The notes below the pieces were generated by a model. It was not told the DNA's origin, searched no databases, and was given only the letters and a program-made list of their open reading frames with translations. Below, in pieces: positions 7,031-56,240 of a stretch of 64,000 nt of DNA. A program made the translations under genes and the position numbers. Numbering within the stretch: the first letter of the stretch is position 1; each line of letters opens with the position of its first letter. The DNA is taken from the IMG/VR virus record IMGVR_UViG_3300042564_002819, positions 62,001 to 126,000 of that record, one strand, 5' to 3'.

Positions 7031-7878
7031 TATTTTATTCCAATTTTCATAAATCTTGTATACTTAGGTAAAACTAATTCACCCTTAAAAAGTGTATTAG
7101 TCATAGGTGCTTTTTTATCAAACTCGTCTAAATCTGTTGAACAATTAACATGTTCTGCAACTTCAAAATAATTATTTCCTTGTAAAATTACTAATTTTCC
7201 TGTTGGAATTTTTTCATACCAATCTTTAAAATTTTCTATATGCTCGCAACTAGTATTAATAATTGTATTAGGGATATCAGTTATAGGATAACTCATCCTG
7301 TTATTTGCATTGCTCCAATATTGCCAAGTATGTTCTCTGTAATCAATGTCTTGTATATTTTGTATTAATGACTTAAATCTCCACTGATCTGTAAACCAAG
7401 GTTTGTTAAAAACTTCTGCAATATCTACTGTGGTAGGATCAATATCAAAACTTCTAATTTTGTCAATTTTAATTCCGCTTTCAAACAACATTACTGCAAG
7501 TGTACCATACCACCCTGCACATAAAAAAACTGTACCTAACTCAACATCTAGTTTTTTTAATTCATTAACCAACCATAGTTTACTTTGTAATTGACCTCTA
7601 CTAAAACAATCGTTGTCAATCTTTAAATTGTTAACATAAAAGTTTTTGAATGCTGAGACAAATTGAGTATCAACGTAATTGTCTAATAATGGCCAAAGTT
7701 TCCATGCATTGTCTTCTAGAATTAGTTTTCTTAAATCTTCTTTGTTTTGATCATTAACTATGCGAAAAATACTGTTTAAATCTCGGTCAATATAAGCTCT
7801 ACGCAGGTCTGATAATTTATTATTATCAGAATAGAGTAATTCAAATCTATCTAATATCTCAAATATTTCTAGCATCAA
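7030..7878 (-). CDS. Putative class I SAM-dependent methyltransferase
   Basis: VFLCAGWYG (motif I-like), SFDIDP (acidic end of beta2), IINTSCEH. Confidence 0.6.
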   Translation of the reverse strand: MMLEIFEILDRFELLYSDNNKLSDLRRAYIDRDLNSIFRIVNDQNKEDLRKLILEDNAWKLWPLLDNYVDTQFVSAFKNFYVNNLKIDNDCFSRGQLQSKLWLVNELKKLDVELGTVFLCAGWYGTLAVMLFESGIKIDKIRSFDIDPTTVDIAEVFNKPWFTDQWRFKSLIQNIQDIDYREHTWQYWSNANNRMSYPITDIPNTIINTSCEHIENFKDWYEKIPTGKLVILQGNNYFEVAEHVNCSTDLDEFDKKAPMTNTLFKGELVLPKYTRFMKIGIK

Positions 7879-10432
7879 ACTGTTCCTTTAACCAATTAAA
7901 GTCGTTAATTTTTTTCAAAGTTTCGATGCTGTCTTTATTTCTTGCACCAAAAAGTGCACCAAATTTAGCACCATCTATTGCATATTTGCCAAACGGTCTA
8001 TCTTTGCCTGTTGTACACCATGTTTGCAATCTGTTTTGCGTTTCTGTATCTTTTTGCCTATCGATAATTTTACTGCTTAATTTAGTGCATTCTCTAAAAG
8101 CACTTTTCCAAGTATTAAACGGGTCTGTGTTAAATCCTGTGACATTAGAGATTTCTTGCACTGCTTTAAACTTGCTGCTAATGCTAGTTGTCATATCAGG
8201 CTTTGATGTATCCATATTAATAGTTAGTTCTGTAGGAAATAGTTTTATGCCGCCGTATCCATATACAAGATCATTAATCGGATTTACAGATCGCCATACA
8301 TGCACCATTTCTTTATCCCAACGAGGAACTTGATAATCAAATTTAAAATTAGATTCTACAAGTGCGTCGCCGTCGACAATCCAAAACATATCAGTTGAAC
8401 ATAGTTTAGCTGCCTCTATATGTGCCTGATGAATTCCTTTAACTCCGTGAACACGCTTTGCTCTAGGAAATCTGGCTATCAAATATTTGTAATACTCGTC
8501 TGCGTTGGGTTCTTGATAACTAATAAAAACAATGTCGTATAGTGCAGGTGTTGATATAACCACGTTGACTTCTTTTTTATGAGCAATAAATCTATAATCT
8601 AATTCTCTTTTACTGAATTTTGCCTGTTTACTGCAAAGAAGAATACCGTCATTGTACTTTCCATTTAAATATGCATGATTTATTGTTCTGTCATACGTAT
8701 TATCATGCGTAAAATATGTGTCGTATTTAAATCGTGTTGTTGGATTTACATAACTAGGAATAATCCAAAACATTTCAGTTTTAGAATTTTCAAGTGCATA
8801 CAAGTATTCGTCATAAGTGTCAACATTAAACTTTTCGTATTGTACAGGACCACTTGCTACAACAGGCCATTCTTTTCGGTTAAGTATAAACTTATGATTA
8901 ATTTCTTTTTCAGAAATTTTTCTATTTTTACTAAACAAGAAAACACCGTTATAATAGTCTTTATCATTTACTCGATGTATAAACGAATGATTTGTTGTTC
9001 TGTCATATTCGTTATCATGAGTAAAATAGATGTTAAACAAAAAGTTATCATCTATTTTTATATTATTGCTTGTACCCCAAAACATTTCAGTTTTAGAATT
9101 TTCAAGTGCATACAAGTATTCATCATACGTATCTATATTAAATCTGTCATATTGCACAGGACCACTTGCTACAATGGGCCATTCTTTTCTATTTACAATA
9201 AACCTATGTTCTATTTCTCGTTGAGTAAGTTTCTTATTTTTAGATAGTAAAAACACACCATTATATAAGTCATTGCCATCAACACGGTGTATAAAAGCGT
9301 GATTTATTGTTCTGTCATATTCGTTGTCATGAGTAAAGTATACATCAAAATCGAAAGAACTAAAGTCAATGTTATTACTAGTACCCCAGAACATTTCAGT
9401 TTTAGAATTTTCAAGTGCATACAAGTATTCGTTATAAGTGTCAACATTAAACTTTTCGTACTGTATAGGTCCACTTGCTACAATGGGCCATTCTTTTCTA
9501 TTAATAATAAATCTATGTTCTATTTCTTTTTTTGTCAAAACACAATGCTTACTACATAAGAAAACTCCATTGTATAAGTCTTGGTCTTTAACTCTGTGTA
9601 TAAAAGCGTGATTTGTCTTAGAGTCATAATTATCATGAGAAACATATATACGGTTTAACACACTGTCGTCAACACAAATGTTTCTCGACAACATCCAAAA
9701 CATATCAGTATTAGAATTTTTAAGTGCATACAAATATTCATCATACGTATCTATATTAAATTTGTCATATTGCACAGGACCACTTGCTACAATGGGCCAT
9801 TCTTTTCTATTAATAATAAATCTATGTTCTATTTCTTTTTTTGTTAAAGGTCTGTTTTTACTACAAAGAAATATTCCGTTATAGTAATCTGTTCCGTCAA
9901 CGCGGTGTATAAAAGCATGATTTTCATTTCTGTCATAGCTGTTATGATGAGAAATATAAAAATTGATTATTAGTTCGTTATTTTCTTTTACATTTCTTGA
10001 CAACATCCAAAACATTTCAGTTTTAGAATTTTCAAGTGCATACAAATATTCGTCGTAAGTGTCAATATAAAACTTGTCGTATTGTATCGGACTACTAGCT
10101 TTTATATCGACTTCTTTTTTATTAATAAAAAATCTATGAGAGATTTCTTTATTTGATATGTTAGAATTTTTTGGAACTAAACAAATTCCGTCGTAGTCTG
10201 TTCCGTTTAAAAAAACATGAATGTAATCTTTACTCCATTCATCTGGAGTATAAGAAAAATCAAAACTTTCTAATACATCACAGTCGTCCCAAATTACCCA
10301 AAACATTTCAGTCATAGAAATGTTTTGTGCTTGTCGAAAATCCACTGCTACTTTTGCTATAGGAAAACGAGCTTTTATTTTTTTAAAGTTTTCATTTGAA
10401 AACTTTTGTTTAATGTAAATTATGTCATACAT
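7859..10432 (-). CDS. Multi-repeat glycosyltransferase-like protein (tandem degenerate GT-A-like units plus an intact C-terminal DGD domain)
   Basis: C-terminal DIVFISYQEPNA...HGVKG..AH..AAK...FWIVDGD is paralogous to 27367..28299; it is preceded by internal ~103-aa repeats. Confidence 0.7.
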   Translation of the reverse strand: MYDIIYIKQKFSNENFKKIKARFPIAKVAVDFRQAQNISMTEMFWVIWDDCDVLESFDFSYTPDEWSKDYIHVFLNGTDYDGICLVPKNSNISNKEISHRFFINKKEVDIKASSPIQYDKFYIDTYDEYLYALENSKTEMFWMLSRNVKENNELIINFYISHHNSYDRNENHAFIHRVDGTDYYNGIFLCSKNRPLTKKEIEHRFIINRKEWPIVASGPVQYDKFNIDTYDEYLYALKNSNTDMFWMLSRNICVDDSVLNRIYVSHDNYDSKTNHAFIHRVKDQDLYNGVFLCSKHCVLTKKEIEHRFIINRKEWPIVASGPIQYEKFNVDTYNEYLYALENSKTEMFWGTSNNIDFSSFDFDVYFTHDNEYDRTINHAFIHRVDGNDLYNGVFLLSKNKKLTQREIEHRFIVNRKEWPIVASGPVQYDRFNIDTYDEYLYALENSKTEMFWGTSNNIKIDDNFLFNIYFTHDNEYDRTTNHSFIHRVNDKDYYNGVFLFSKNRKISEKEINHKFILNRKEWPVVASGPVQYEKFNVDTYDEYLYALENSKTEMFWIIPSYVNPTTRFKYDTYFTHDNTYDRTINHAYLNGKYNDGILLCSKQAKFSKRELDYRFIAHKKEVNVVISTPALYDIVFISYQEPNADEYYKYLIARFPRAKRVHGVKGIHQAHIEAAKLCSTDMFWIVDGDALVESNFKFDYQVPRWDKEMVHVWRSVNPINDLVYGYGGIKLFPTELTINMDTSKPDMTTSISSKFKAVQEISNVTGFNTDPFNTWKSAFRECTKLSSKIIDRQKDTETQNRLQTWCTTGKDRPFGKYAIDGAKFGALFGARNKDSIETLKKINDFNWLKEQFDARNI
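8543..10084 (-). repeat. Five intragenic tandem repeats of about 300-312 bp (~103 aa)
   Basis: Recurring QYD/EKF..DTYDEYLYALENSKTEMFW...HRF..NRKEWPIVASGP; near-identical DNA blocks such as catttcagttttagaattttcaagtgcatacaa near 8771, 9083, 9392 and 10013. Confidence 0.92.
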
Positions 10433-10435: not shown

Positions 10436-11962
10436 TCACCAATTGTAACGAGAATCTAGAAATATGCTAGCAAATTCCGGAAATGTGTCAATAAAGTTTG
10501 TGCCGCGACGCTGATCGTGTTGCAATACATATTTTACAAAATTTATTTTATTTATATGCATTTCGTTGGGTGAAATATTTGACCTATCTCGAAAAATATC
10601 TAAATTTCTTTCTGCTTTTGCTATTTCAAAATCGTAAAATCCTGCAAAGTTAGATACGTCGGAATTTTTTTTCATAAAGTCAATTCCTTCTTCAAGGTAT
10701 GAAGAAAATTCTAACGGAAGCACATTCATGTTTTGCCATGCAGGATTTCTTAAAATAGGAATGTCAAACCAAATTCTTTGTCTGGGATGAATTTCGTAAT
10801 CCGGATGAGTATAATACGGATCATATATTGGTATGAATTGTATGCCCTGCTTGTCTTTGCTAAATTCCGTTCTTAAATCGAGTATATATTGTAAGTAATC
10901 CTTAAATTTAGGAAAACTTAATGCATTAAATGTATTAATAAATGTAACTGTAGTATTCTTAGTTTCATTTAAAAATCTACTAACGTTTTCTTGCATATAA
11001 GAATAGTTTAAACCTGTACGAATATACTCCGCTTGGGTTCCTACCGAGTCAACACTTACAAATAATGCAAGATTTTTTAGTGCCATATTTACATACCAAT
11101 GATTGTTAGCACCCGGGTTAAAGCGTTCTTTGTCTTCCCATATTTGTATTTCCTCGAGTTTCTTAATTTTTTCTATAAACTTGTCCATTAACTCAGGCTT
11201 TGGAGGAGAAAAATTACTAGTGATACTTAACTCTAACCAAGTGTTAGGATTTTCATATATGTAATCTAAAACTTTAAAAGTATTTGCATCCATAAGAGGC
11301 TCACCGCCTGTAATTCTAAACACTTCTAATTTTTTATATAACTCAGGCCACCATTTCCAAAAAGCAGATATATAAGGATTTTCCGATTGTTTTGATTTTA
11401 AAGGCATTAACCCTGCAGATGCAAGGGCATCTAAATTGTTATGCCCAACTTCATTATTGTTAATATCTAAAATTTTAAACTCGCCTAACTTTTTAACTTC
11501 GTCTTCCCACTCAGTGCTTAAATGCGGAGAACAATACATGCATTTTAAATTACATGCTTGATTAAAGTTAACTTCCATATATCTAGGATTTATGTTACTA
11601 GTGTCAAGAGAATCTATAATATCACTGCGAGAATTTTGTGCCCAATATTCTCCTGATCGATATATCCTGTCACTTCTATTTCCAGAATCTTCAATTTTCC
11701 AGCAATACGAGCATCCTGCCGGTCTTTCGCCTTTGAGCATTAAAGATCGTTCTGCTTTTTTTTCTTGTGTATTATGAAGAGCACTAGGATTTTTTTCTAT
11801 TTCAGGAATACTTATTTTATGTAACGGCGGATGATAGCAGCTATGTGTTGTTCCATTGGTTAAGTGCATCGACACTTGTGCCCATTTAGCATAACACATT
11901 GTTTTACTTATTTTTTTAAGTTGATTTTCGGCTATATCTGCAGATTGGTTATAATCACTCAT
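10436..11962 (-). CDS. Radical SAM protein with N-terminal Twitch domain (CxAKW/HSCYHP subtype)
   Basis: CYAKW...HSCYHP...CSYCW, then CNLKCMYC and TGGEP. Confidence 0.9.
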   Translation of the reverse strand: MSDYNQSADIAENQLKKISKTMCYAKWAQVSMHLTNGTTHSCYHPPLHKISIPEIEKNPSALHNTQEKKAERSLMLKGERPAGCSYCWKIEDSGNRSDRIYRSGEYWAQNSRSDIIDSLDTSNINPRYMEVNFNQACNLKCMYCSPHLSTEWEDEVKKLGEFKILDINNNEVGHNNLDALASAGLMPLKSKQSENPYISAFWKWWPELYKKLEVFRITGGEPLMDANTFKVLDYIYENPNTWLELSITSNFSPPKPELMDKFIEKIKKLEEIQIWEDKERFNPGANNHWYVNMALKNLALFVSVDSVGTQAEYIRTGLNYSYMQENVSRFLNETKNTTVTFINTFNALSFPKFKDYLQYILDLRTEFSKDKQGIQFIPIYDPYYTHPDYEIHPRQRIWFDIPILRNPAWQNMNVLPLEFSSYLEEGIDFMKKNSDVSNFAGFYDFEIAKAERNLDIFRDRSNISPNEMHINKINFVKYVLQHDQRRGTNFIDTFPEFASIFLDSRYNW

Positions 11963-12850: not shown

Positions 12851-13890
12851 TATCTAAAATCCTCGTATTTGTCATCACGTACAGTATCTAATGTAACACA
12901 GTGTGGGCCACCGCTTAATGTTCTTGCATGTCGCATTTGTACTGGCATTACATCAAAACCACGTGACTCTAATTGTTTGATTAAAGGAATTTGATTTTTT
13001 TCAACTGCAACTAAATTTTCGCTAATACTTAGCACATTCATACTTAACCAAGGACTTGCAGGAGCCCAGTGATCTATAAATGGTGTAGGAATTGGATCTT
13101 CTGCCCAAATTTTATCCCAAGATTTAAAATAGGCAGGAATGTTATTATTGTTAACTCTGCTCGGATTTAACAATACCTTTCCTGGAGCCAAAGGTAATAT
13201 TGTTGTATCGACATGAACATAAGCATATATGTTATCCATAATATGTACATTATATTTTTCACCCAATGTTGATTGTAACCATTGAGATCCTAATTTATTA
13301 CCAGAATTTGAAACAAGATAAAAAATGTCTCGACCGCATTTAATAACGTTGGCTGCGTCGAACGCAATTTCGTATTCGGTTAAAGTAGGTTTAGACAAAT
13401 CTGATCTGTCATAAAGGTCATCTAACAGTTCAGGTTTTGGAGCAGATATCCATCTGCTACCTTTAGAAAAGTATTCCTTAAAAAGTTTTCTATAACCTAA
13501 GGTTTCAAAGTATCTAGATCTTAACGGCATCGGAGTTTCTATTAGCATATCTCCAATTACTAAAACACTATCTCTAGGACAATACATGTAGTATCCATCA
13601 GACGTCCAGTCCGGTGTTGCACATAGCAACCCTAAGTTTTTTATTTCAGGACGATGAACTGTAACATTAACAGATTCTAATTGTTTTTGAAATGCATCTA
13701 AATCTTCTACAGTTTCGTCTATAACTTGTTCAGGGTATTTTCCTGCTGGCAATCCGGAAACTGTATCGTAATTTGCATAGTCAACACAATGAATGTCATG
13801 TTTTTTTGTTTTAGGTATTTGTGCATTTTCTGCCCGACCTAATATTACTTCTTTTAGAGTTCCCCATTCTGTGTTCGAGTTAACTTTCAT
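12850..13890 (-). CDS. Amidinotransferase (glycine / inosamine-phosphate amidinotransferase family)
   Basis: VNSNTEWGTLKEVILG, YCPRD, and catalytic-type FDAAN (Asp), HVDTT (His), GGPHC (Cys). Confidence 0.9.
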   Translation of the reverse strand: MKVNSNTEWGTLKEVILGRAENAQIPKTKKHDIHCVDYANYDTVSGLPAGKYPEQVIDETVEDLDAFQKQLESVNVTVHRPEIKNLGLLCATPDWTSDGYYMYCPRDSVLVIGDMLIETPMPLRSRYFETLGYRKLFKEYFSKGSRWISAPKPELLDDLYDRSDLSKPTLTEYEIAFDAANVIKCGRDIFYLVSNSGNKLGSQWLQSTLGEKYNVHIMDNIYAYVHVDTTILPLAPGKVLLNPSRVNNNNIPAYFKSWDKIWAEDPIPTPFIDHWAPASPWLSMNVLSISENLVAVEKNQIPLIKQLESRGFDVMPVQMRHARTLSGGPHCVTLDTVRDDKYEDFR

Positions 13891-14536
13891 ATATTCTGTA
13901 AGGCCAAAAGACCTTTTGCTCCTTTAAATCTTTATAGGTTAAGTTACTGCCGGTATCTGGATTTTCATCAGGTAGATTTTCTAAAAGTAATAATCCCGAA
14001 GCTGCTTCTTCCGGAGTCATGTACATGTGATAACCAATACATTCATAATCGTCCTCGTCGTGCTTAACGTATTTGTGACGACCATCGTAAATCATTGGTC
14101 TGCACCAATTTATAAAATCATAATCGTCGGTTAAAATGACACCACCTTTTCCTATTTTAAGAGTTTTTCTATGATGGAAACTAACACAGTAATAAGAACC
14201 TTTTACATACATGCCTCTTTTAAACCTAGTAGCACCATCTATAATAGGGGTAGGTTCTAAGTAATATTCTCCACTCCATTCTTTTTCAACAAATTTAATC
14301 CTATTTCCTGCATGTATTATTTGCATAGGTGTACTTGCGTAAGTATGCGAAGGTATGCTAATTATTTGATTTTTTATGCCTAAGTATTTCATACAAAGAA
14401 ACATAGCATTTGAACAACTGTCAACACAAACAGCGTATTTTGATCCTGCATATTCTGCTAATTTGTTTTCAAAAAGTGTTACTGCATCCCAAGGATCGTT
14501 AATTTCATATCCTTTATTTTTCAGTTGGGATATCAT
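13880..14536 (-). CDS. Short DegT/DnrJ/EryC1/StrS-family PLP aminotransferase
   Basis: FENKLAEYAGSKYAVCVDSCSNA, IIDGA, SFHHRKTLKIGKGG. Likely start ATG 14536 after GGGGA (ORF track starts at 14608). Confidence 0.8.
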   Translation of the reverse strand: MISQLKNKGYEINDPWDAVTLFENKLAEYAGSKYAVCVDSCSNAMFLCMKYLGIKNQIISIPSHTYASTPMQIIHAGNRIKFVEKEWSGEYYLEPTPIIDGATRFKRGMYVKGSYYCVSFHHRKTLKIGKGGVILTDDYDFINWCRPMIYDGRHKYVKHDEDDYECIGYHMYMTPEEAASGLLLLENLPDENPDTGSNLTYKDLKEQKVFWPYRIYES

Positions 14537-15254
14537 AAGGTTCCCCTGTTTCTTCGTCAAACCAATAAAGGCTTCTATGAGGCAAGTCTTTTGAATCGTA
14601 TGCTGCATTGCTTACATAAAAGAAAAGTCTAAATGCATTTCTTGTTATTCCTTCAGGGCATGTTAACGGATCTGGAAATCCATGAAATCCTTTTTTATGG
14701 TGTCTCCATAATACTGCTCTGTTGAATAGCGGAGGTACTCTTTGTATTATATTTTTATTTTGAAAATCATTAAACTGTAAGTGGCCGCCCCACTCATCTT
14801 TCCAGTCACTATTTAAATATATAATAAACGAAAGCATACGATGAACTTTCATTGTATCGTTCCAATTAAAGTCAGTATGTATTTTTAACGACGACCCGGT
14901 TTTAATTTTGCTATATCCGGCTCCAACTAAGTAAGGGTCCGGAATTAAATCTTTAATCCCAGTTATTTCTGTAAGCCATTTCATAAATTGTTGACTATGA
15001 AACTGATTTACAAAATTTTCTGCTACAGGTGCAACATCCATGTTTATACATTCTTTCATGCTGCTACCGCGTCTAGTAAATTCTGTCCAATAATAATCTG
15101 GAATATTATTGCATTCTTTTTCTAAATCGTAGGCTAACTCTAGTGGAAGAAAGTCGTCAAGCACAATCATAGGAAATGGAGGAGTGCCTACAAATGTGTC
15201 ATTTAATTTTTTAGTATTGTTAAATTTTGTTCTAACGTGATCGATTAATTTCAT
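14514..15254 (-). CDS. 2OG-Fe(II) oxygenase
   Basis: PFPMIVLDDFL, HTD (HxD), YLN..W..EWGG.L, distal HGF and Arg. Confidence 0.85.
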   Translation of the reverse strand: MKLIDHVRTKFNNTKKLNDTFVGTPPFPMIVLDDFLPLELAYDLEKECNNIPDYYWTEFTRRGSSMKECINMDVAPVAENFVNQFHSQQFMKWLTEITGIKDLIPDPYLVGAGYSKIKTGSSLKIHTDFNWNDTMKVHRMLSFIIYLNSDWKDEWGGHLQFNDFQNKNIIQRVPPLFNRAVLWRHHKKGFHGFPDPLTCPEGITRNAFRLFFYVSNAAYDSKDLPHRSLYWFDEETGEPYDIPTEK

Positions 15255-25169: not shown

Positions 25170-26004
25170 AGTCATTCCTACAGTCAAGTGCTTTTTTAAA
25201 ATTTAATAATTTTTGATTTGTTGAAAGTCTTTTTTCTAACATAATTAAATTAATCTGTGTTTGAAAGTCAAAATTTGTCATTACTTCGTCGACATATTCT
25301 TCCATTTTTACAATATTTAAATCTAATATTTTTAAAGATACTATTTCTTTAATATACATTAGTGTGTAATTTGTTAATGGGTGATCGTCGTGATAGTGTT
25401 GCATTTTTTTATCATTGTCTACATAGTAACAATTTTTTATTGGCATTTTTTTACTACGAAAAAAAACCGTCATTGTTTTACTATCAATAAAATGATTTTT
25501 ATATAATGAGAGCTTTTTAATTAACGAATTATAAAAATAAGAAAGAGTTGTATCTATAAACAATTTTGAAATTTCGTTAGAATAAACCATACTATCAGGA
25601 GACATAAACATAAAATACCATTTACAACCTGTATTTTCTAATAAATTTATTAAATTAACCATATACGTTAGTGTTTTTATTATTGAAGTTTTATCTGAAA
25701 TTAAAAAATCTAATTTAGCTTTTGTTAACTGTTCAGATGTTAAACTTCCTAAACACACCCAATCTCCATTTTCATTGATGTAATCAGTTCTGTTTGGTTC
25801 TGTCCACTGTATTATTACCGTATCAGTATTTTTTACTTTATTACTGAGTAATACGTTGGTTGCTTTGTGAAATATATAAAAATTTCCACATCCTGGATTT
25901 CCATAATTTTTTGTCACATTGTAACTTTGTGCCACAATGTCTGGCCACATCGGCCACGAATATTGAGCAAAACTGCATCCAAACGTATATAGGTTACCCT
26001 GCAT
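25162..26004 (-). CDS. SGNH-like protein
   Basis: FGCSFAQ, NYGNPGCGN, IQWT..NR.D, late DDHP; same motif layout as 12005..12850. Confidence 0.55.
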   Translation of the reverse strand: MQGNLYTFGCSFAQYSWPMWPDIVAQSYNVTKNYGNPGCGNFYIFHKATNVLLSNKVKNTDTVIIQWTEPNRTDYINENGDWVCLGSLTSEQLTKAKLDFLISDKTSIIKTLTYMVNLINLLENTGCKWYFMFMSPDSMVYSNEISKLFIDTTLSYFYNSLIKKLSLYKNHFIDSKTMTVFFRSKKMPIKNCYYVDNDKKMQHYHDDHPLTNYTLMYIKEIVSLKILDLNIVKMEEYVDEVMTNFDFQTQINLIMLEKRLSTNQKLLNFKKALDCRNDYE

Positions 26005-27370
26005 TGGTAGTAGTATCCTTACATAGATTATAAAAATTTTCCATTTCAGGAAATGTTTCTAAAAAGTTTACATTTCTTCTTCTATCGTACTCTTTAAACC
26101 AGTTATAAAAGTCTTTTCTACCTTCGACAATTTTATTTTCTTCGTATGCTACCGATGCAAAATAGTTTCTAACACGACGAAATCTTTCATATTCTAAATC
26201 AGAGAATTTAGTAGTATCTTTTTCGTCTGTATTGTCTTCTATAAATTTTAATATTTTATCAAAATAAGGAAGAAATTCTTCCTTAGGAAGAATATGCATA
26301 TCATATTGCAACGGTTCTTTTAAATACGGAGTATCAAACCTAATTCTTCTTCTCGACGGATGATGATATTGTTTACGCCATTCTAGTATTTTTTCTAAAA
26401 ACAAAGTAAAACTAGTAACACTTAAAATATTAAAGGTACACATGAAAGTAATATCTGCACCAGTAACGTCTAAGTAGTTTTTCATATTTGATTCCCACAA
26501 ATCGACATCTAATCCGGTTCTCATATACTCAGCACGTTTTCCAAAAGAATCTATACTTGAATAAAGTTTAAACTTTTTTATGGAGTTTGTTTCTAATAGC
26601 TCGTTAACACTGGTTGATAACTTTGTTACTAATCTCGGACTTATACCCAAGTTACTATTTAAATTAAGTTCAAGGTGAGGACGGGGATCTTTTTTCAATC
26701 TCTCAAATAAATTCCATGTGCTTTTATGCATCAACGGTTCGCCACCTGTAATTCTTAAAATATTTAGAGTTTTTGAAAGCTCAGGCCACCATTCCCACCA
26801 TGCTTTAATGTAAGGATTGTTATCTTCTTCCATTGGCTTAAACCAGTCAATGTCTAGTGCATGGTTGTTAACACCTTCGACTTTTCCAAACTTTTTAATT
26901 TCAGCATGATAAGAACTACTTGCCATTGGGTGGCAATATCCACATTTAAAATTGCATTCATTTGAAAATGCAACTTCAACATATTCAGGATTAACGTTAA
27001 AATCCCACGGCTTTGTTAGAATTTCTTCAACTCTCTCAGGCTTATAAATTGATTGGTTTCTAATCATTCTATCTGAGATGTGATCGTTACCAAGAGATTC
27101 TACATTCCAACAGTATTTACAGCCTTCAGGTTTTTCACCAATAAGCATCTTTGCACGTTCTTTTTTCTTTGTTAGAGTGTTGTGCAAAGCACTAGGATTA
27201 TTTTTTATTTCCGACAAAGAAATAGCGTGAGGAGCAGGATGATAACAACTGTGGGTATCACCTGTGTGCAAGTATATTGTTGTATGATGCCATTTAGCTA
27301 AACAAAACGTTGGACTTATTTTGTCCATTTCTGTATTTTGTTGCTTGATTAAGTCTGTTTCTGAAGTCAT
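25994..27370 (-). CDS. Radical SAM protein with N-terminal Twitch domain (CxAKW/HSCYHP subtype)
   Basis: CLAKW...HSCYHP...CKYCW, CNFKCGYC, TGGEP; paralog of 10436..11962. Confidence 0.9.
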   Translation of the reverse strand: MTSETDLIKQQNTEMDKISPTFCLAKWHHTTIYLHTGDTHSCYHPAPHAISLSEIKNNPSALHNTLTKKKERAKMLIGEKPEGCKYCWNVESLGNDHISDRMIRNQSIYKPERVEEILTKPWDFNVNPEYVEVAFSNECNFKCGYCHPMASSSYHAEIKKFGKVEGVNNHALDIDWFKPMEEDNNPYIKAWWEWWPELSKTLNILRITGGEPLMHKSTWNLFERLKKDPRPHLELNLNSNLGISPRLVTKLSTSVNELLETNSIKKFKLYSSIDSFGKRAEYMRTGLDVDLWESNMKNYLDVTGADITFMCTFNILSVTSFTLFLEKILEWRKQYHHPSRRRIRFDTPYLKEPLQYDMHILPKEEFLPYFDKILKFIEDNTDEKDTTKFSDLEYERFRRVRNYFASVAYEENKIVEGRKDFYNWFKEYDRRRNVNFLETFPEMENFYNLCKDTTTNAG

Positions 27371-28299
27371 TGTTCTCTATCTATAAATTGTTGATCGAAT
27401 GTCCTTGCAGGATTTTGATATACTGTTTTAAAAAACTTACTTTGTTCTGCTTCTAGTGGATAAGCCGCAATAGGTAAATCCAACACCGGAATAAGTGCAT
27501 CAGCTAAGTCCTCGCATTTACGGATAATGTTTTCTTCATTGACATTTTTAGTAACAGTATTGTTCCAGTAATCATTAAGCCAGTCAAAGTCTCTAACATT
27601 TACATAATCCCAATCGGATAACATTGTCTTATGTAATCCTTCTCGAGCACCGTAAATAGCCCACATACCGTTTTCTACATCAGCACCTATCATTAACCAA
27701 ATATAAAGTCTGTGTAAATTTTTCCAATGGTTCTTTTTAAAATCTTCTATCGATGGCTTAATGCCGCGGTCGAGCGACATTTTAACGCCTTCGCGAAAAC
27801 CTGCACGCCATGCTTGTTGTGGAGTTGCGTTATTAAAAATTTCACTGTAACAGCTATTCATTTGAATGTATTCTACATCCCAACAAAAATCTACTTGTGC
27901 GTGAGGGTTGTTTGGGTCTGCATTTTCATGAGTTTTCATGTTAAGAACGTATTCTTTTGGCCAGCATTTAAGGCCGCCGTTTCCGTACATAAGACCATTA
28001 ATAGTATTTCGAGCAGTCCAACTAATAACGCACTTTTCTAAATCTTTATTTTCATCAAAGTCAAACTCCTTTGTTAAAAACTCCGATTTAATAGTGTTGT
28101 CGCCGTCAACGGTGATAAATCTATCCGTTTCAGAGAGTTTAGCACATGCCTTATGTGCTGCATCTGAGCCTTTGACTCCGTGAACACGTTTTGCCCATGG
28201 AATTTTTTTGCACAAGTCTGCATAATTTTTTTCTGCATTAGGTTCATCATAACTTAAGTATATAATGTCGTAATCAAGAACTCTAAATTTATTTCCCAT
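27367..28299 (-). CDS. Putative GT-A glycosyltransferase (DGD motif)
   Basis: DIIYLSYDEPNA...HGVKG..AH...FITVDGD...YGNGGLK...AWRAGFRE. Start ATG 28299 after GAGG (ORF track 28347). Confidence 0.65.
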   Translation of the reverse strand: MGNKFRVLDYDIIYLSYDEPNAEKNYADLCKKIPWAKRVHGVKGSDAAHKACAKLSETDRFITVDGDNTIKSEFLTKEFDFDENKDLEKCVISWTARNTINGLMYGNGGLKCWPKEYVLNMKTHENADPNNPHAQVDFCWDVEYIQMNSCYSEIFNNATPQQAWRAGFREGVKMSLDRGIKPSIEDFKKNHWKNLHRLYIWLMIGADVENGMWAIYGAREGLHKTMLSDWDYVNVRDFDWLNDYWNNTVTKNVNEENIIRKCEDLADALIPVLDLPIAAYPLEAEQSKFFKTVYQNPARTFDQQFIDREQ

Positions 28300-28882
28300 T
28301 AATAACCTCGTGATAATATGTTTCAAGTCGTTTAATAGTATATACACTTAATAATCCAACAGTGTGTTCTATTTGATTTTCAAATAAAATTTCATAGTCA
28401 TTGTAAATTAAATCTGTTAAATTAACAATAATGCATCTTTCCAATTGATGCGGATCATTAAATCTAGTAATGCTAAACATTAAGGGTCTGTCTAAAGATA
28501 CTTTTTTTGTTTTTAAGTTTTCTTTTATAGACTCATCTAGTTTAAAAACCCATTTTTTATTTTCAATGTCTTGTACTATAGTTAAGTCTGGCCTAGAACT
28601 ACTCTTATATTCTGGTATTTTATGTACCTGTGTATTAATATCAAAGACAACTTCTTCGTTGTTAAATCTATGCTTTAATATATAGTTCTTTTTTATTGTA
28701 TCAAAGATTACTTGATAAGTGTGAAACTGTTCCTGACCTGTGATTAAATTATAAACTTCGTCAACGTCTACCTCAATATACAATCCTTCGCTGTCGTTAG
28801 AATTTCCTACTGAGAGTAAATTTCCCAAATCGTCAAAATAAACAAATTTTTTGTTTGAAACATATAGATTATCTGTGTTCAC
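28289..28882 (-). CDS. Hypothetical protein
   Basis: 197-aa ORF filling the operon gap; no recognisable motif. Confidence 0.7.
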   Translation of the reverse strand: MNTDNLYVSNKKFVYFDDLGNLLSVGNSNDSEGLYIEVDVDEVYNLITGQEQFHTYQVIFDTIKKNYILKHRFNNEEVVFDINTQVHKIPEYKSSSRPDLTIVQDIENKKWVFKLDESIKENLKTKKVSLDRPLMFSITRFNDPHQLERCIIVNLTDLIYNDYEILFENQIEHTVGLLSVYTIKRLETYYHEVINGK

Positions 28883-38965: not shown

Positions 38966-38975
38966 TATTTATTTA
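38966..38975 (-). promoter_or_regulatory. Late promoter-like TAAATAAATA
   Basis: Overlaps the stop of the giant gene, about 18 nt upstream of ATG 38948. Confidence 0.5.
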
Positions 38976-41900
38976 GGTAAGAGTATTGTTGCTTCACGCA
39001 AGAATCTGCTTATATTATTATTAGAAGTTGTTAATGATTTGCCACTTTCATTCCATACTTTACCAGTTGATCTTGCAATTACTACCTTAACTCCTGCTGG
39101 CGGTGCTATTGCCAACACCAGGTTATTATCTTCTATAGAAAATTCTGGCGGAATTGTAACATCACCTTCGGGACTATCCTGTGCTATTGTTTGATCAAAC
39201 AACTGTATTGAATTTTTTCTTAGGCGTCGGCCAGCAACAAAAACTTCAATTTCGTCAACGCTTTCAGGAATCATATAATCTCTGAAAGCAAATGTTGTAG
39301 CTGTAGAACTACCATCTGCTATTTCAGTTTGTGTAAGAACAACATCTGAATAGTTAATAGTTTCTTCAGGGCCTTGTCCATAAGCAACTGTGCCAACATT
39401 ATAAAGATTTTTTACACCTGTACCAAGTGTACCTCTTCTTAATTGTTGTAACTTATTTCCAACTACTTCAAAATATTCAATTCTTTCACCGTCAATAAAA
39501 ACTACTCCCGGTATATTTTTTGATTTGTTTGGCTGGAATATACCACTTGTGCTTTCAAGTACAATTCTTAAGTCATAATAATTTAAAGGTTCTGCTAGTA
39601 CATAAGAATTACTTTGATTTAGCCTCTTATAATGTGTTCTGTTTAGCATATCTTTAAAAATTCTAAAACCGTACTTTGGTGAAACAGGTGAATTTCCAAA
39701 TTCAATAACATCTATTTTGTCATTATTAAATGGTAACGACGATAATTGTATTGCATCCATTGTAGGAACTAAAACATAATCTATGTTTGGTGTTAACAAC
39801 TCGCCATTAAGTGCTACCCAAACGTAGTTTGCACTCGATGTAGTGCCGTTTAATTTAATATATCCACTCGATGTAAGATTTCTTGTTATCCAATTTTCTG
39901 TGGTTTCGTCAACATATGTATCTCTAAGTACTTTATATAAAGTTCTCTTAAAGTTGTTAATGTCGTGGTTACTAAATTGATATATTTCAATATCTGTACC
40001 AGAGCTCGGAGGAGTAGCAAAAGTTAAACTGTCACTTAATTCGTAAGTTACATCTAAAATTGTTAACAAAGTTTCGCTTAATTCAAACTCTGGAGAAATT
40101 GTAAATGAATTTCTAATATCATTTCTAAAAGATCTTACAACAATTTCGTCCTCAGAGACTGTTTTAACATACGCAGTATAAGATGAACTGTCGTTAGTAG
40201 ATACCAAAGTAATTTCAGAGTCTGCAACAATCATGCTGTCCACTGCACTTGAAAACTTTATTCTTGAATCTATAAAATAGTAATCTGCATCAGTTATAAT
40301 ATAAACTTCAAGTGTACTTCCTGAAATTCCAATATCTTCTTGCAACAATCTTACAATGCCGACTGTTGAATCAAATGTAAATTCTTCTTTTGTTAATTGT
40401 ATGCCGTTAACAAAAACTAATACGTTTGCTTCATCTATAGTTGTTGTGTCGCTGTATTGCCAAGAATCGATTGCATATTCTCTCTCATCTGTTGTAATAA
40501 ACGACTTACTGTAACCAGGACTTAAAATCTGGTTGTTAGATTTAACAATAAGATTGTATGCTAACGGTTGCTTGTTAAACGGAACAGGATTATCTGTACC
40601 ATCAAAGTCATGATAATCTGTGCTGCCATCTGCTTCGAAAGTTCTGTCAATAATTATTTGACTATAAGTTTTTAATGGTGTATCGTATATCGAATATTGA
40701 ATTAGATCTCCATTTGCAATTGCCGACGACTCGAAAACAATCTTAAGTCTGTTTGGATATTGCTCAGTATCTTGTGTTCTAATTTGATTGTAATCTCTGC
40801 CTTTTTCTTTAACTATTCCGTTAACAGTTACAAATGTTGACAGTGTTTCACTCCAAACTGCCGAAGTTACATAACTAGTTGTACTTCCGTCTGATATAGT
40901 ATATTCAGTGTCTATTAGATTAGCACCGTTAACGCCAATAGTTAAGATTGACAATAATGATCCGGTTGGTATAGTACTATCAGAAAACGAAATTGTTTGA
41001 TCTTCGTAATCAACTGTAAACATATCTGGTTTTAAGATTTGGTTATCAACTTTAACAATTATTCCGTCAGCTGTTTGAGGAATATTAGGAAGATCAAACA
41101 CAGATCTTGTACCATCTATTTTATAGTTTGCAACAGTAACAATTCCAACACCATCTGCAGATCTATGATATACTTTTAAGTCAAGTGTGTCTAGAACTTG
41201 TCCAGGTACTAACTCTTCTGGTCCTCTCGATGATGCAGTAACGAAGCCGTCACCGTCTATAGTTATATCAGCACTTGACAAACCTGTTGCTGTAGTATAT
41301 GCAAAGTTACCTCCTGAGATAGAAGTATCGTAGCTTGTATCTGTTGGTGCAAAGCTTCCGTCACTTGTGCTTTTTCTTATTATAACTATGTCATTAGCAA
41401 CTGTTTCGATTAGCTCTTCATCGATAGTAACAGTATCTGTTACACCATCTCCAATAATAGTAGCCATTTTTGCATTTAGATTACTTAACGGTGTACTAGT
41501 GCCGTAATTCTCGTCATCAAGTCTAATATTATTTAGATAAAAGTTGTATTCAACATTTAATTCTAGTGGCTTACTTAATGTAAGTATTGAAGTACTTCCA
41601 TCTAATATAAAAATTTCATCTTCGTATGTATTGTCAAAAGTATCCCAGGGCATGGATCCGTATCCACCGACACCAAATCCTTGCTCAGTACCAAAATCGA
41701 CACTGTTAACATTTACACCTTCGAATGTAACGCCATCCATTAGTTGAGACAAATCTTTGCCAGCCATGCCTGTGGTTGGATTATAGAAAAAGTTTATTCT
41801 ATCAGCAGCATGTAATAAAGATATGTCTTTTTTATAAGTAATCGATATTTGTGATCCCAATGCTGGTGCATCAACAAATTTTATGTATCCAAGATGACGG

Positions 41901-44900
41901 TCAAATCCTTTTGATTTGTCAATGTCATTTCCGATTACAAATTTGCTACTTAATTGCTGAATTCCATTTATTGTAACAACGTAGCTATCTGTTCTAACAT
42001 TCATTGGCCATTTTAGTACAAATTTTTCTTTTGCTGCTGTTCCTACAAATGATTCTGTTTCTTCTAATTCAGTAAACAGATAAGAACTGCTAATTCTGTC
42101 AAATCTTAAAACAACGTGTGCTGATCTAACAACTCCGTTTCCTAAAATAGCAACAGCAACCGCTGGTTCTCCGCCTTCATCTTGTGTTCCGTTAATAGAT
42201 ATCAATGGTGCTTTATAATATTTTCCACCTTTATTTACTATTTCAATTTTTGACACACGGCCTCTACTTAAGTAAGCTTTTGCTGTAGTTCCGTTCTCGC
42301 CTTCAACTACAACAACCGGTGTTTCTTTGTATTTTGATCCACCGTTAGCTACTTCTATAGATACAATATCGTAACCGTTGTTTTCTGTCCAACTTCTGTA
42401 AGGGTATTGTAAGTATTTGTCAATAACATCTTGAATTTGATTGTTTTCATACTTAGCATAACTAGTTTCTATTTCTTTTGTTATTTCGTTATAGCTAGGA
42501 GGTAAGTCAAAATCTGTAACCAGTGATTCAGTAGGTTCGATAGAAGAATACGCACTTATATATTCTCTTACTTTTGTACTGTATGGCTTTACTTCGTTAA
42601 CATAATCTTGATAATTTTCGAGATTATCGTTTTGGAAGTTAACAGGTTGATGCAAGTTGCCAACATTGTGTTTTACTCTTACAAAGCTAGTTTTAAAGGC
42701 CCAGTCAAGTCCATGCTGCTCGTGTATTGCATATCTTAAACTTGCAAAGAATAGATTTATGTATTCAACTGCTAAATCGCCTATAAATATTTCATTTTTT
42801 AACGCTGATAAAATATTTCTCAATTCGTTTACAGGTTCTTTATCATAGAATGTTAAGTCAAATACGTTTGCATCATATCCGCTGTTGATAGATGCATAAT
42901 CGTATAGCCTTGTAGAAAGCTGTATAGTACCATTTTGTCTACCCACAGTTTTATAATTTACTGTATAATCTTCAGTTGTCGAATCTGCAATTTTTTCTAA
43001 CAATAGCCAACCGCCAGAACCGATGTTATTAATTTTTATAACTTCTCCGATTTCGTCGTCGAGTCCAAATAATTCATAACTTTGATCTACAACATGATCG
43101 ATTTGTGTTAGGCTTGTATAGTCCGATAGATACCAGTCAGCATAGTCCCAATATCTAGTAGTGTCGTAGTTCTGATTGTCTTTTCTATTCCAAGTTTGTG
43201 TTGCTTTGTTCCATTCATAAATTGCCCAACGGCCGCCTATTTCGGCATCAGCCTTAACTAAAACACTGTACTTTCTAACATTCAATTTTACATTGTCAGT
43301 ATAGTTTTTACCAGAAGATCTAATATATGTACTAGTAATTTGTCCAAGATTGTTTATTGTTGTTTTAACAATTGCATTAGTGCCATTGCTGTCAACTATT
43401 TCAACATTCGGTGCAACACGATAACCTCTACCTGGATTGTCAATGTTTATAGAAATAATTTTTCCATTTTCAATCACCGGTGTTAATTGAGCTTGTTCTG
43501 TTTTTGATACTCCTACAAAACGAAGATCGTCTACTGTGTCAACTATGCTGTCATATCGACCTGTAGTTATTGCTGGTTCCTCATCTTTTAAGAATAATGT
43601 AGAAATATCATAGTTGTCAACTATTTGTCTAGTAATTAAAACACTGTTTGTTCTTTCAACAAGTTGTTTGACTGCTTCTAATCTATTTACAAACATTCCT
43701 TGACGTGGAGCATTTAAAATTCCATATTTCTGTCTAACAGTTAATGACGAATCTGGAACATTTTTTGAATTTTGATCATAACCAACTAAACTGTCAACCC
43801 ATTTGTTTTCAATTTCAGAATTTAATATAACATTGTTATATCCTTCAGTTATAAGCTGATATTCTGAATGTATATTTGAATTTAATGTTTCATCTTTGGC
43901 TATAGTAAAGTGGATCGCAGTATTTTTGTCTTCTATAAAAGTTTTTACATTATACAATGCAAAACTATTATCGCTTAACAACACTGCAAAACGATATCCT
44001 TGCCCAGCCGGATCTGCTATTAGATTTTCTATTGCAGATGCAGATAGTTGACGTTTACTATTTTCTGGAACATTCTTTTTACTCTTAACCCAGAAATAGA
44101 ATCTATCTACAAACGATCCTGACACAGGATCATAAACTTTTTTAGAACTGTAAATAGTATCGTCGTATAAAGGCTGACCACTTATGCCTTCGGCAAATCC
44201 AGAAGGAGTATCTGCTAATGCAGCCCATCTTGATGGAATTACTGTTGATTCTACCCATTCATAAACATCGATTGATGCACCTGGTAACAGCTTATTCCAA
44301 TTCGAAATTCTGTATTGATCGTCTCCTTGATAAGGATTAAACCAACTAGCAGTTTCTAATTTCCACCAAAGTTTTCCAACTTGGCTTTCTGTCCAACTGT
44401 TAACTGTATCAACAACAACACCGTCTTGTTGATTTACATTAAATGAATAGATAGCAGGATCGTAGAAGGTCTTCCATGTAATTTCTTGTTCAGCAGGACC
44501 TGGTATTTTTCCTTGACGAGGATCAATTACATCAAGATTTACTAATAAATCATTGGTATTAATCGAATACAAGAAGCATCTTTGTATTTTTTCATTATTC
44601 GGTTTGCCTTCTTGTATTGTTACTTCCGTCCAGCTATTTGAATTCTTTGTAGAACGCAAGTCTGCAAATAATCCTAGAGATGAGTCTTCAGAAGACTCAT
44701 AGTTATAAATTAAAGCAGAATCTTCAGTGTTAGCAGGATTTAGTTTAGGAAAACCTATATATAGATGATTATCTATTAATTTGAAGTTACTAATGTCGTT
44801 ATACTTTGTATTTCGATTGTATGCAACATCCTCGCCATATATATAAGAATCTCCAAGTTTTTGGAATAACGCAATTCTGCCAGTATCTTTCAACACATTG

Positions 44901-52780: not shown

Positions 52781-55700
52781 TAGTAAATAAAGCCTCCGGT
52801 ATTAGTAGAATTTGTTTCTGTAGAACTTTGAAGTCCTGCTGTTGTAGTTGTATAGCTTGTAACTATATTTCCTGTAGATCTTAAACGCTCTGCTGTAATT
52901 GCTGATATTACTTCAACATCATCAACTGTTGCACTGCTTATAAAAATTTCATCCGATTCTGCTTTTATTTCATGCAAACTACCAAATGAACTTTCTGAAG
53001 ATCTTGGAACAATAACAATGCTACTTAAATCTGGCGATAATTCTTTTATAATATAAGCCGACAATTCGCTCCAATAAAATGTTTCGCCAAAATCCCAGTT
53101 GTCTAATGTAAAGTATTGATTTATAGCTGTTATAACTCGAGACTTTAAATCATTATCATTTACAACTCTTTCAGGATTTTTTACTATTTTAAAAACTGCT
53201 TGCATATTTGTATCACTTTTACTACCAAACAAGACTTTATATCTAACCGAATGGTAAATTATTTCATCACTAATAGATTTTATAGCATTTATTTCAGATC
53301 CGTATGATCTGAAAAGTTGATCTGTGCTAGGTGGATACGGCATCTGAGTAGTAGTTCCTGCGAGCCACTGTCTAAAATTAGTATCATATTGTTTTGTTAA
53401 AATGTATGTATCAATTATATTTGAAGAACTAGGATCTATTCTATTGTTTTCATCACTTGCGTGTATATACTGAAATTTCAACTCCGGTCTTCCGATATAA
53501 GCATAATAATCATAAACTACAGTTAATGTTCTCGAAGCTGTTGTTAACTGATAAAAACGGTCTTCGTCGATAACATAATATATAGGATCATTTTCAACTA
53601 ACATATTTATGTCGGATTTTCTAGTCACTGTTATTATATTTTCGCTCGACGCATCAACATAAATTATAAATTCGTTGTTGTTTATAATAACTTTTTTATT
53701 AAAAATATAATTGCTTTGATTTACAATTTCAGTAAAAATTTGTGGATCGTCGATTACACCATCGTCGTCACTGTCAAAGAAGTTTACTTCTACTTTTTTA
53801 CTATCAATGTATCCGTCACCGTCTCTATAAACTCCTGAAATTTCCCAATCAAAATCTCTAGTAAATGGCGATGTTCCAGTGCCTGTGTTTATATCATTGT
53901 TAATATTAAGAACAGTAATTTTATCTTTAATTATTTTTCCAGACTTACTATCAAATATTTTTTTGTTATTGTCAAAGTAAAATCTTATTTCGTTGTTACT
54001 TTCAAAAACATATCTTAGTGTTCTATATGTTAATTCGTAAGATGATCCATTTGTTTCAAAAAGAATTATCCAACTGCTATCAAGAGACTGACCTGTTTCG
54101 TCGCCAGACAATCCTAAGTTGAAATCGTCAAGCACATTTAGGTTGTCTTGAGTAATTATTTCCCAGCTTCTTGTTTCTCTATCGTATCGTAATCCAAAAG
54201 TTCTATAAGCGAATATTTGATCAACCATAGATACTTTTACATCTTCTGATATTTCTCTTACAAACTTTGGTTTAACTAAAGTTAGAACAGAATTATTAGG
54301 AACAATATCATTAAAAATTATAGGACCTAGCCCTGTTGAAGTAACTGTTGTGCCATCACCTGTTACACTTATTACTTTAATCCACTTATAAGAAGTGGCA
54401 TTTTTTGCATTAGCATTGTTAGTTACAGTTCCGTCTGGTAAGAAATAATATCCAGCTGCTGGAACAAACTTAATCATTGCTCCTGCTTCTATGAATCTCA
54501 AAGGACCTTCTGTGAAACTACCTACTTGATACTTTATCAAGTTTGTATCAGTAAAATAACCTGTTGATCTATTTGTATCCAATGTTACAAGATTCCATTT
54601 TAAATCTAATTCTACATAGTTTTGATCAGGGAATTCTTTTAAATAAAAACTTCTTACATTGTTGTCACTGAGTATATCTGTAATTTTATTTTCAACAATG
54701 CTTTCGATATCTGTTCTAGTTACAAAATTAAAGTTATCTTTTTTATCTTTGTATTCTGTATACAATATGCCGTCGGTGCCAAACAGTGTTGTCTTACTAT
54801 ATTTTCCTGTTGCATCTAACAGATCATAATATCTACTTATACCACTTGATGTTCTGTTAACTGCTTTAACTTTAATAATATCTTGACTTACACCCAATGG
54901 TCCAACATTATAATCTTCAGCTGTTATTAAACGATTTTGAGTATAATAAGTTGACGGAGCATTTGTTTTAATACTTTCGATTGTTTCAGTACTACTTGCA
55001 TTATCAACGGCTGTTTTAAGTTCAAGTGTGCAAGTAATAGTTTCACTTCTTCCAATTTTGCTTATGTAAGGAATTCTAATTGCAACATTCTTTATACTTG
55101 CAGGAAGTATTGTGTAATCTTTATTTGCACTTGTTCTATAATATACTCTAAATTTTCCCTTAGGAAGATTTCCAAATATTCCATCAGAAAAAACGAGACT
55201 TATTCTGTCATCAACACGAGTTAACACACTGTAAATATTTTTTATTTGTTTATTTAAACTGTTATAAACAATGTTATTTCCTTCAACAGCAGAAACTTTT
55301 GTCCATAGCTCTGATTCGTTATTTGAACTGTCAAGGCTATAAAGCCAAACATCTGTGTCATTTATGTTTTGTACATCAACATCGACTTTTTGATTAGGAG
55401 TTGGAAAATCTATTAATAGATCATTTCTTTTTAAAGATCCTTGTCTAAAATGCATAAAGAATCCAGTGGAATTACTTCCTGCACCTTGTCCGTTGTCTCT
55501 GTATAAAAAGGAAAGCTGATTTCCGGGCAACGGTGGTTCTTCTGATATTTCTCCATTTGAAATAGTCGAACTAACTACTTCAAATTCAAAGTTTTGATTG
55601 TTAATCGGTTTTGAAAACGCATATACAGGGATTCCAGTTGTCAAAGACGAAAATCTATATTGTTCTGTTGGTATTCCGCCAACTACTTCGTATTTTACAG

Positions 55701-56217: not shown

Positions 56218-56240
56218 TAGCACTTCCTCAGTTTATGTTA

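Follow-up and report, generated by a model that had tools for sequence, protein, structure and literature searches.

Why would a predicted phage glycosyltransferase carry six additional copies of its own fold, when only one of the seven keeps the catalytic motif? This question is raised by a gene of a freshwater jumbo phage, located in a 64-kb stretch of DNA, hereafter called the window, which is part of a virus record of IMG/VR (IMGVR_UViG_3300042564_002819; 121,779 bp, estimated to be about 34% complete, genomic GC content 31%). A single ATG-start open reading frame (ORF) of 857 amino acids (aa) plus a stop codon fills positions 7859..10432 on the minus strand. On balance, we favour the reading that its product is a soluble phage glycosyltransferase (GT) of an uncharacterised, mainly viral family with a GT-A (GT2-like) fold, in which a single active domain is placed on a docking or spacing arm of pseudo-GT-A modules.

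In the protein, the pentapeptide T[ED]MFW is found at seven positions, aa 41, 138, 242, 345, 448, 552, and 680 (spacings of 97, 104, 103, 103, 104, and 128 aa), and it is followed, in order, by VIWDD, MLSRN, MLSRN, GTSNN, GTSNN, IIPSY, and IVDGD. The DxD motif is kept only in the last of these seven in-register units; the six preceding ones are designated U1 to U6 (Table 1). Tandem Repeats Finder detected a sole array in the window (8763..10138, period 309 bp, 4.4 copies, 74% matches, score 1189). A hidden Markov model (HMM) built from U2–U5 found U6 at E 2.5e-34 and U1 at E 2.6e-13, while its scores for its own source units, E 1e-60 to 4e-63, are circular. The preliminary description of this DNA, a glycosyltransferase of seven homologous units with DGD in the last one only, is thus borne out by the ORF, the motif positions, the repeat array, and the HMM. 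It also counted five highly similar repeats, which is true for four of them: U2–U5 are 67–74% identical to one another in aa and 69–76% in nucleotides, whereas U6 is of a distinct type (45–57% aa identity to U2–U5) and U1 is at 34–38%. The long identical DNA blocks that it reported are real, though of modest size: the longest exact match, between U2 and U3, spans 65 bp, and the longest matches of the other U2–U6 pairs are 12–45 bp. These blocks coincide with the peptide stretches of highest conservation, which are found at the borders of the units. The overall DNA identity between the units of this gene is 63–76%.

The AlphaFold2 model of aa 620–857, constructed with 43 homologs, has a predicted local distance difference test score (pLDDT) of 90.7 and a predicted template modelling score (pTM) of 0.84. 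A Foldseek search of this model against the PDB revealed 49 matches at E<=0.001, and all matches listed are glycosyltransferases, including RmlT (3e-5), ppGalNAc-transferases, ArnC, GtrB, WrtF, and PBCV-1 A64R. A fold search among viral models returned GT2-like enzymes, including the glycosyltransferase of mycobacteriophage Che8. The domain contains the Rossmann-like GT-A core with a seven-stranded mixed sheet, and the sequence and the strand order of the model place the DxD at the end of the fourth strand, as expected of a GT-A enzyme. In an alignment of 42 family sequences (A3), both aspartates of this motif, D57 and D59, are invariant, as are Y94, G95, and G97 of the YGYGG loop, with G98 nearly so; the block around D741 and D746, a putative counterpart of the xED catalytic base, is also conserved. 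Judging from its position, YGYGG would be the G-loop of GT-A enzymes. The C-terminal unit of nearly all long homologs listed carries DGD or DAD. The core is followed by a helical subdomain (invariant F149, R150, E151, K154, R171, and W175 in A3), which is specific to the family, is present in all its forms, and is barely covered by the fold searches. No transmembrane segment was detected in the 857-aa protein (the top 19-aa Kyte–Doolittle window scores 1.14). We conclude that, by modelled fold and motif order, the protein is a soluble GT-A, GT2-like glycosyltransferase with a predicted activity.

The family assignment is less straightforward. A Pfam search gave no match for the 857-aa protein or its domains even at E<=10, and PHROGs yielded just four unannotated matches (E 2e-5 to 9e-3); a sub-threshold aldose-epimerase match was discarded as spurious. 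At the level of the family, sub-threshold matches to PF00535 were obtained for 9 of the 42 members (best E 0.0052) and to PF13641 for five of them. By curated thresholds, the protein does not belong to PF00535 or CAZy GT2, and membership in PF00535 is not claimed here. In the ESM Atlas, the related clusters are viral and unnamed; the nearest named cluster is PF00535 (score 0.87), which can serve as a lead only. Three Photorhabdus species encode a single-domain homolog of 234 aa with 40% identity (P. asymbiotica scaffold L028, 5995–6699; also L027 and L030), located in an operon with the order GT4, homolog, GT2, GT2, nucleotidyltransferase, ABC exporter, and HlyD. This homolog could be a culturable model for the catalytic domain.

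As for the additional units, the catalytic-domain profile alone finds U1 at E 4e-15 and each of U2–U6 weakly, but in register. In HHalign comparisons, the U1 family matches the catalytic domain with a probability of 99.1% (E 8.5e-19, 91 columns), and the S-type internal units match U1 with 99.5% (E 2.6e-22) and the catalytic domain with 88.7% (E 2.6e-6). The secondary-structure order of each unit parallels the catalytic core up to the last long strand of the core, and therefore each unit is a whole, stripped GT-A core and not half of one. The alpha1-beta2 element is present in U1 and in the catalytic domain and is lost in U2–U6. An independent search, made without Foldseek, assigned U1 to GT-A or nucleotidyltransferase folds in 50 of the 50 matches listed. 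The AlphaFold model of U1–U3 (pLDDT 93.9, pTM 0.87) has a three-residue gap between the last strand of one unit and the first strand of the next. Because of this pTM value and these short gaps, the model suggests that the modules, with linkers of at most three residues, form one rigid, elongated, continuous body. Thus, the origin of the extra units from a glycosyltransferase, as described earlier, holds by profile homology and shared fold matches.

In 120 long homologs, a DxD-like pattern was found in only 1 of 894 extra units. The first units carry [PWYF]xD in 111 of these 120 proteins, the internal units comprise 401 of SxN types and 146 of PxD types, and the unit adjoining the catalytic domain is in most cases of a distinct P-bearing type (IIPDY, MIPPE, or similar). 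The SxN, which occupies the former place of the DxD, is conserved in at least 90% of the S-type units. Residues that follow beta1 and beta2 of the catalytic domain and are conserved in A3 (S8, E11, A14, R30, H32, G33, G36, H38, and H41) are unconserved in U1 and deleted in the S-type units. Since both the DxD and these conserved N-terminal residues of the nucleotide site are missing, the earlier term "catalytically dead" appears reasonable as far as motifs can tell, and the internal units are almost certainly not canonical transferases. At the same time, their mean column identity is 62% versus 54% for the catalytic domain, and their conserved polar residues are S29, N31, R52, H56, H60, E84, and R88. 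Conservation at least as high as that of the enzyme domain implies that the internal units are functional and are not mere linkers; they may retain a ligand site.

The family is large. A search with the catalytic domain revealed more than 4100 clusters in the 131–416 aa bracket, all unnamed and from freshwater and marine metagenomes, with length peaks at 227 aa (the catalytic domain alone) and 344 aa (one extra unit). The full-length protein retrieved at least 831 long forms whose lengths rise from 641 aa in steps of about 103 aa, and a search with a 1491-aa member added forms of up to 2010 aa with 16–17 extra units, some containing higher-order repeats. The long forms therefore span 641 to 2010 aa and 4 to 17 units, and the whole family has 0 to about 17 extra units; unit number correlates with protein length (r = 0.97). 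Exactly one catalytic domain, always C-terminal, was found in 136 of the 136 long forms that were cut into domains (120 retrieved with the full-length protein and, from the search with the 1491-aa member, the 16 longest). The ESM Atlas clusters of the family are 74–100% viral. Among 50,697 cultured phage records, the sole homolog is an unannotated protein of the Ralstonia jumbo phage RsoM2USA, and all genes shown in the 16.7-kb region around it are annotated as hypothetical.

The number of units changes quickly, as follows from near-identical catalytic domains with different unit counts. Of 37 protein pairs with 90–99% identical catalytic domains, 26 (70%) differ in unit number, and pairs with 99–100% identical catalytic domains are one or two units apart (855 versus 751, 980 versus 876, 958 versus 856, and 1300 versus 1124 aa; P0183/P0205, P0226/P0269, P0171/P0191, and P0216/P0264). 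An orthologous locus in a 351-kb contig has the gene order of the window and encodes a 645-aa protein without the two GTSNN units. The variation of repeat number by recombination, which had been put forward as a possibility, is therefore confirmed as far as variation is concerned, and it is fast. The recent expansion or homogenisation assumed for the window gene is not supported, in view of the 63–76% DNA identity of its units and of their relatives. The nearest unit in a protein of another phage is closer (78–82%) than the nearest sibling (57–74%) for U2, U3, U4, and U6, with U5 a tie (73.8% versus 73.1%), so the duplications predate the split from these relatives. Elsewhere in the family, sibling units that are 95–100% identical (P0235, P0175, and P0154) represent recent duplications, and 134 of 654 internal units have their nearest relative in the same protein. 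Codon identity at aa-identical positions is 0.8–1.0 at the unit borders versus 0.4–0.6 elsewhere. This would fit recombination or conversion at the borders, although it is not decisive, since a strong AT codon bias makes conversion and constraint inseparable.

Several side observations can be added on the family. A 374,257-bp contig of the Joint Genome Institute (JGI) encodes two long-form paralogs, of 644 aa (P0270) and 977 aa (P0317), so arrays of different length coexist in one phage. Homologs with 47–68% identity are located on 335-kb, 494-kb, and other contigs filed under bacterial metagenome-assembled genomes (MAGs) (Neomarinimicrobiota, Bdellovibrionia, Rickettsiales, and others), which may be jumbo-phage contigs binned into MAGs. 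In JGI source records, several long forms are named "CYTH domain-containing protein" or "predicted transcriptional regulator". These names look spurious, since the Pfam scan of the window protein gives no such match.

The favoured explanation can be outlined as follows. Catalysis would reside in the C-terminal module alone, i.e., the GT-A core (aa 631–767) together with the helical subdomain (aa 768–857). The six non-catalytic modules would have arisen by duplication of the catalytic core, giving the complete U1, the four stripped units U2–U5, and the adaptor U6. By analogy with the human enzyme B3GLCT, whose precedent is the reason for favouring a docking role, the arm may dock on the acceptor and/or set the distance from an anchoring point to the catalytic site. 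Its length would be evolvable through gain and loss of whole units by unequal recombination. The donor is probably a modified nucleotide sugar from the surrounding gene cluster, and the acceptor would be intracellular, with a virion fibre, another virion protein, or a host envelope precursor as candidates. This explanation is supported by the invariant or nearly invariant DxD aspartates and YGYGG loop, by the sub-threshold PF00535 matches in the family, and by the GT operon of the Photorhabdus homolog. It is further supported by the homology of the units and the model of U1–U3, by the position of the gene and its paralog as the only candidate transferases of the record amid many sugar-nucleotide genes, by the selection acting on the internal units, by the single catalytic domain that always comes last, and by copy-number changes between near-identical relatives.

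Some results weigh against this explanation and should be set beside the support. No Pfam or NCBIfam model reached threshold for the protein or its parts, and neither a single-sequence nor a profile search of the PDB revealed a solved relative. The Foldseek search with the U1–U3 model was not significant (best E 0.05, with glycosyltransferases at the top of the list), and the fold searches with this model effectively covered U1, so the GT-A nature of U2–U6 is a prediction from profile homology and from the order of secondary-structure elements. A ligand site, or even an activity of their own, could be the reason for the conservation of SxN, histidines, and arginines in the internal units. Finally, all copy-number data come from short-read metagenome assemblies.

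A more far-reaching form of the favoured explanation appears considerably less probable. In this form, aquatic jumbo phages would have made a stackable module of the enzyme's own fold, and a rigid rod of 0 to about 17 pseudo-enzyme units would act as an evolvable ruler that determines where the single active domain places its unusual sugar on a periodic target. Such a target might be a giant tail fibre, a different virion lattice, or a polymer of the host envelope. If so, strains that are otherwise identical would alter their glycosylation pattern in the phage–host arms race by gaining and losing units. The preliminary description proposed a sugar-binding or chain-length-ruler role for the dead modules, which is likewise doubtful. 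In this reading, lectin-like units, or a ruler for a polymerising transferase, would hold a growing glycan, and the unit number would set polymer length. There is no evidence of a polymerising activity, the protein has no membrane segment, no export partner adjoins the gene, and the internal units have lost an alpha-beta element of the nucleotide-sugar site. Known rulers (WbdD and WbbB) are coiled coils and not domain arrays.

The protein could also be mainly structural, i.e., a rod or fibre of the virion or a receptor-binding protein whose C-terminal domain binds host glycans without transfer. Host-range proteins of phages typically vary in modular length from one near-identical strain to another. 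One lineage carries the gene in the tail module, adjoining a giant Peptidase_S74 fibre gene and near genes of T4 gp13, gp15, and sheath proteins; in the window, tail-fibre, giant (4603 aa), and baseplate genes begin at about 33 kb, and the giant fibre and baseplate genes are about 28 kb from the 857-aa gene. We consider this unlikely, as the invariant DxD and glycine loop point to catalysis, the commonest forms are proteins of just 227 and 344 aa, and the bacterial homolog belongs to a GT operon. Moreover, the window and two other jumbo-phage contigs place the gene in a sugar and radical S-adenosylmethionine (SAM) block rather than in a structural one.

It is still less probable that some or all of the extra units are active enzymes or cofactor-binding modules, metal-independent or relying on a single Asp (WDD, PxD), in a multi-step assembly line. 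The second Asp of the motif is indeed kept in the 111 first units and in 146 internal units mentioned above, the SxN is well conserved, bacterial GT6 enzymes have NxN in place of DxD, and a metal-independent GT-A enzyme with NxN is reported (PMC3516806). However, the extra units comprise only about 103–116 aa and have neither the helical subdomain nor the PDM/TTS block that follow the catalytic core, and the residues conserved after beta1 and beta2 are unconserved in U1 and deleted in the S-type units.

The same 857-aa protein is encoded on another contig, from JGI (15,282 bp; 99.97% identity over 11.9 kb), and 17 studies of lakes and rivers include metagenomes in which the window stretch is present. 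In three lake runs, each from a different study, every unit is covered by unitigs with zero mismatches and at a depth like that of the flanks. A unitig bridging the whole array was not found in those runs, because shared blocks of at least 31 bp break unitigs of k=31; ordinary reads resolve the array, since the units are just 63–76% identical. One river-metagenome unitig (run X9, depth 4.5) joins position 9345 to 10004 with 31 other letters between them, which is weak evidence for an array about two units shorter; this array may belong to a relative or reflect variation within the population. An assembly artefact (a chimera or a mis-joined repeat), which the short-read metagenomic source and the absence of a Logan unitig spanning the array might suggest and which the preliminary description had named as an objection, is rejected as highly improbable in view of the independent contig from another record, the low unit identity with a longest exact repeat of 65 bp, the tiling by mismatch-free unit-specific unitigs, and the hundreds of homologs that share the architecture.

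The genes around the 857-aa ORF are all on the minus strand (Table 1). The pairing of the glycosyltransferase with a radical SAM gene recurs in other contigs, and the sugar and radical SAM surroundings recur in contigs of 351 kb, 374 kb, and 206 kb. Other genes of the window encode a QueC-like PP-loop protein, DegT aminotransferase, 2-oxoglutarate (2OG) oxygenase, UDP-glucose dehydrogenase, and NAD epimerase/dehydratase. A six-frame search detected no PF00535 or PF00534 genes in the 121.8-kb record, and the 326-aa paralog is the sole other glycosyltransferase candidate there. The 4603-aa ORF probably encodes a giant fibre or an adhesin, and its product is a candidate target of glycosylation. 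The baseplate wedge protein is most similar (36–37%) to those of jumbo myoviruses such as Atu_ph07, SCTP-2, and PA5oct. A thymidylate-synthase-like hydroxymethylase was not found in the record, which, being about 34% complete, is uninformative on DNA glycosylation.

Table 1. Positions of the glycosyltransferase gene, its units and motifs, and other genes of the window.
Feature	Position in the window	Strand	Remarks
Whole gene	7859..10432	-	857 aa; predicted soluble
U1, aa 1–116, N-terminal non-catalytic GT-A-like unit, "W/P type"	10085..10432	-	WDD replaces DGD; alpha1-beta2 element kept
U2, aa 117–220, internal "S type" (MLSRN)	9773..10084	-	
U3, aa 221–323, internal "S type" (MLSRN)	9464..9772	-	
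U4, aa 324–426, internal "S type" (GTSNN)	9155..9463	-	
U5, aa 427–530, internal "S type" (GTSNN)	8843..9154	-	
U6, aa 531–630, penultimate "adaptor" unit (IIPSY)	8543..8842	-	
Catalytic GT-A core, aa 631–767	8132..8542	-	
DxD motif D687-G688-D689	8366..8374	-	Directly after the MFWIV strand (E63–68 of the model)
Glycine-rich loop YGYGG, aa 724–728	8249..8263	-	Conserved in alignment A3
C-terminal helical subdomain, aa 768–857	7862..8131	-	Helices H152–237 of the model
N-terminal-twitch radical SAM protein, immediate upstream neighbour	10436..11962	-	NF033640, E 1.7e-92
Radical SAM genes, at least seven in 27 kb	549–1916, 1931–2980, 3627–5042, 5051–6130, 10436–11962, 19728–21653, 25994–27370	-	
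Paralog, 326 aa, catalytic domain only	27367..28347	-	VDGD kept; 39% identical; C-terminal extension of about 75 aa
4603-aa ORF, CBM_5_12 and FG-GAP matches	38969..52780	-	Directly downstream of the baseplate wedge gene 52780..56223
Four neighbours without family match	6347–7030, 7030–7878, 12005–12850, 12850–13890	-	
DegT-like ORF and upstream 2OG-oxygenase ORF (pair)	13880..14608 / 14514..15254	-	

Some features of the neighbourhood can be noted separately. Three of the radical SAM genes have an N-terminal SPASM or twitch domain and one has a B12-binding domain; such a density of these genes is unusual for a phage. A radical SAM gene of the N-terminal-twitch type (25994..27370) directly follows the 326-aa paralog, and the same pairing is found in contig L011. 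Read by eye, the four neighbours without a family match may carry a P-loop of the sulfotransferase kind, a motif of class I SAM methyltransferases, the GCSW of an SGNH hydrolase near the N-terminus, and a GGPHC C-terminus like that of amidinotransferases. The DegT-like ORF encodes 242 aa against a profile of 360 positions, which it matches in two stretches, and it shares 95 nt at its 5' end with the 3' end of the 2OG-oxygenase ORF upstream. It may have a mis-set start or represent a truncated or split aminotransferase.

The locus thus leads to a large family of mostly viral glycosyltransferases that current family libraries miss and whose sequence clusters, thousands in number, come from lakes, rivers, and oceans. 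In this phage, a large gene cluster for exotic sugars has no recognisable transferases other than those of the family. We propose that such genes be annotated as encoding GT-A glycosyltransferases, in place of the names that refer to CYTH domains or transcriptional regulation. Should the arm serve to position the enzyme on structures of the virion or the host, the chemistry of the phage surface would have in copy number a new kind of determinant, one that evolves fast.

When comparing the family with known systems, its catalytic domain resembles the GT2-type GT-A enzymes (SpsA, RmlT, TarS/TarP, GtrB, and ArnC; PF00535). They share the core fold, the DxD after the fourth strand, and an N-terminal beta1 followed by a conserved acidic or polar motif; however, no phage member reaches the Pfam gathering score, and the core is compact (about 137 aa) and continues into the family-specific helical subdomain of 90 aa. 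STIV A197, domain 1 of PBCV-1 A64R, Mimivirus R655/R699, and the Che8 glycosyltransferase are minimal viral GT-A enzymes, but they are single domains or fusions in which each domain is active, and none contains an array of degenerate copies.

The rulers WbdD/WbdA and WbbB act at the membrane, as coiled coils within termination or polymerase complexes. They have in common with the phage protein the idea of a rigid element of defined length that sets a distance for glycan synthesis, whereas in the phage a soluble protein carries a string of globular pseudo-enzyme modules. No long coiled coil was found in either model, and no transmembrane segment or polymerase/terminator partner was detected, which separates the phage protein from the WbdD/WbbB type. 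The ppGalNAc-transferases, whose catalytic domains are among the fold matches, also couple a GT-A domain to a module without catalytic activity, by which the enzyme is positioned on a repetitive acceptor; this module is, however, a C-terminal ricin-type lectin domain of unrelated fold in a single copy. Gain and loss of whole units between close relatives, as seen here in metagenome assemblies, is characteristic of tandem arrays of variable copy number. The GT-A fold, pseudo-GT-A domains, and variable tandem arrays are all known kinds; the literature searched contains no description of this family, of tandem pseudo-GT-A arrays, or of this combination.

A close parallel is human B3GLCT (GT31), a two-domain GT-A glucosyltransferase in which an inactive duplicated N-terminal GT-A domain forms the acceptor cleft and docks the protein acceptor (PMC13597200). 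This extra domain has lost the DxD, metal and nucleotide binding, and C-terminal elements, and the authors call it "an unusual example" (PMC13597200). The phage units resemble it in being homologous to the catalytic GT-A domain of the same protein and fused to its N-terminal side, and, judging from their motifs, in being without the DxD and nucleotide-site residues; the 344-aa phage members, with one extra unit and the catalytic domain, have the same layout. Unlike B3GLCT with its one inactive domain, the window protein has six, and relatives have up to about 17, arranged in tandem and varying in number between near-identical strains. In addition, the internal units have been pared down to about 103 aa, and the phage family is GT2-like, not GT31, with no detectable sequence relation. 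The phage family therefore represents the B3GLCT principle run to an extreme and provides a natural series for testing the role of pseudo-glycosyltransferase domains.

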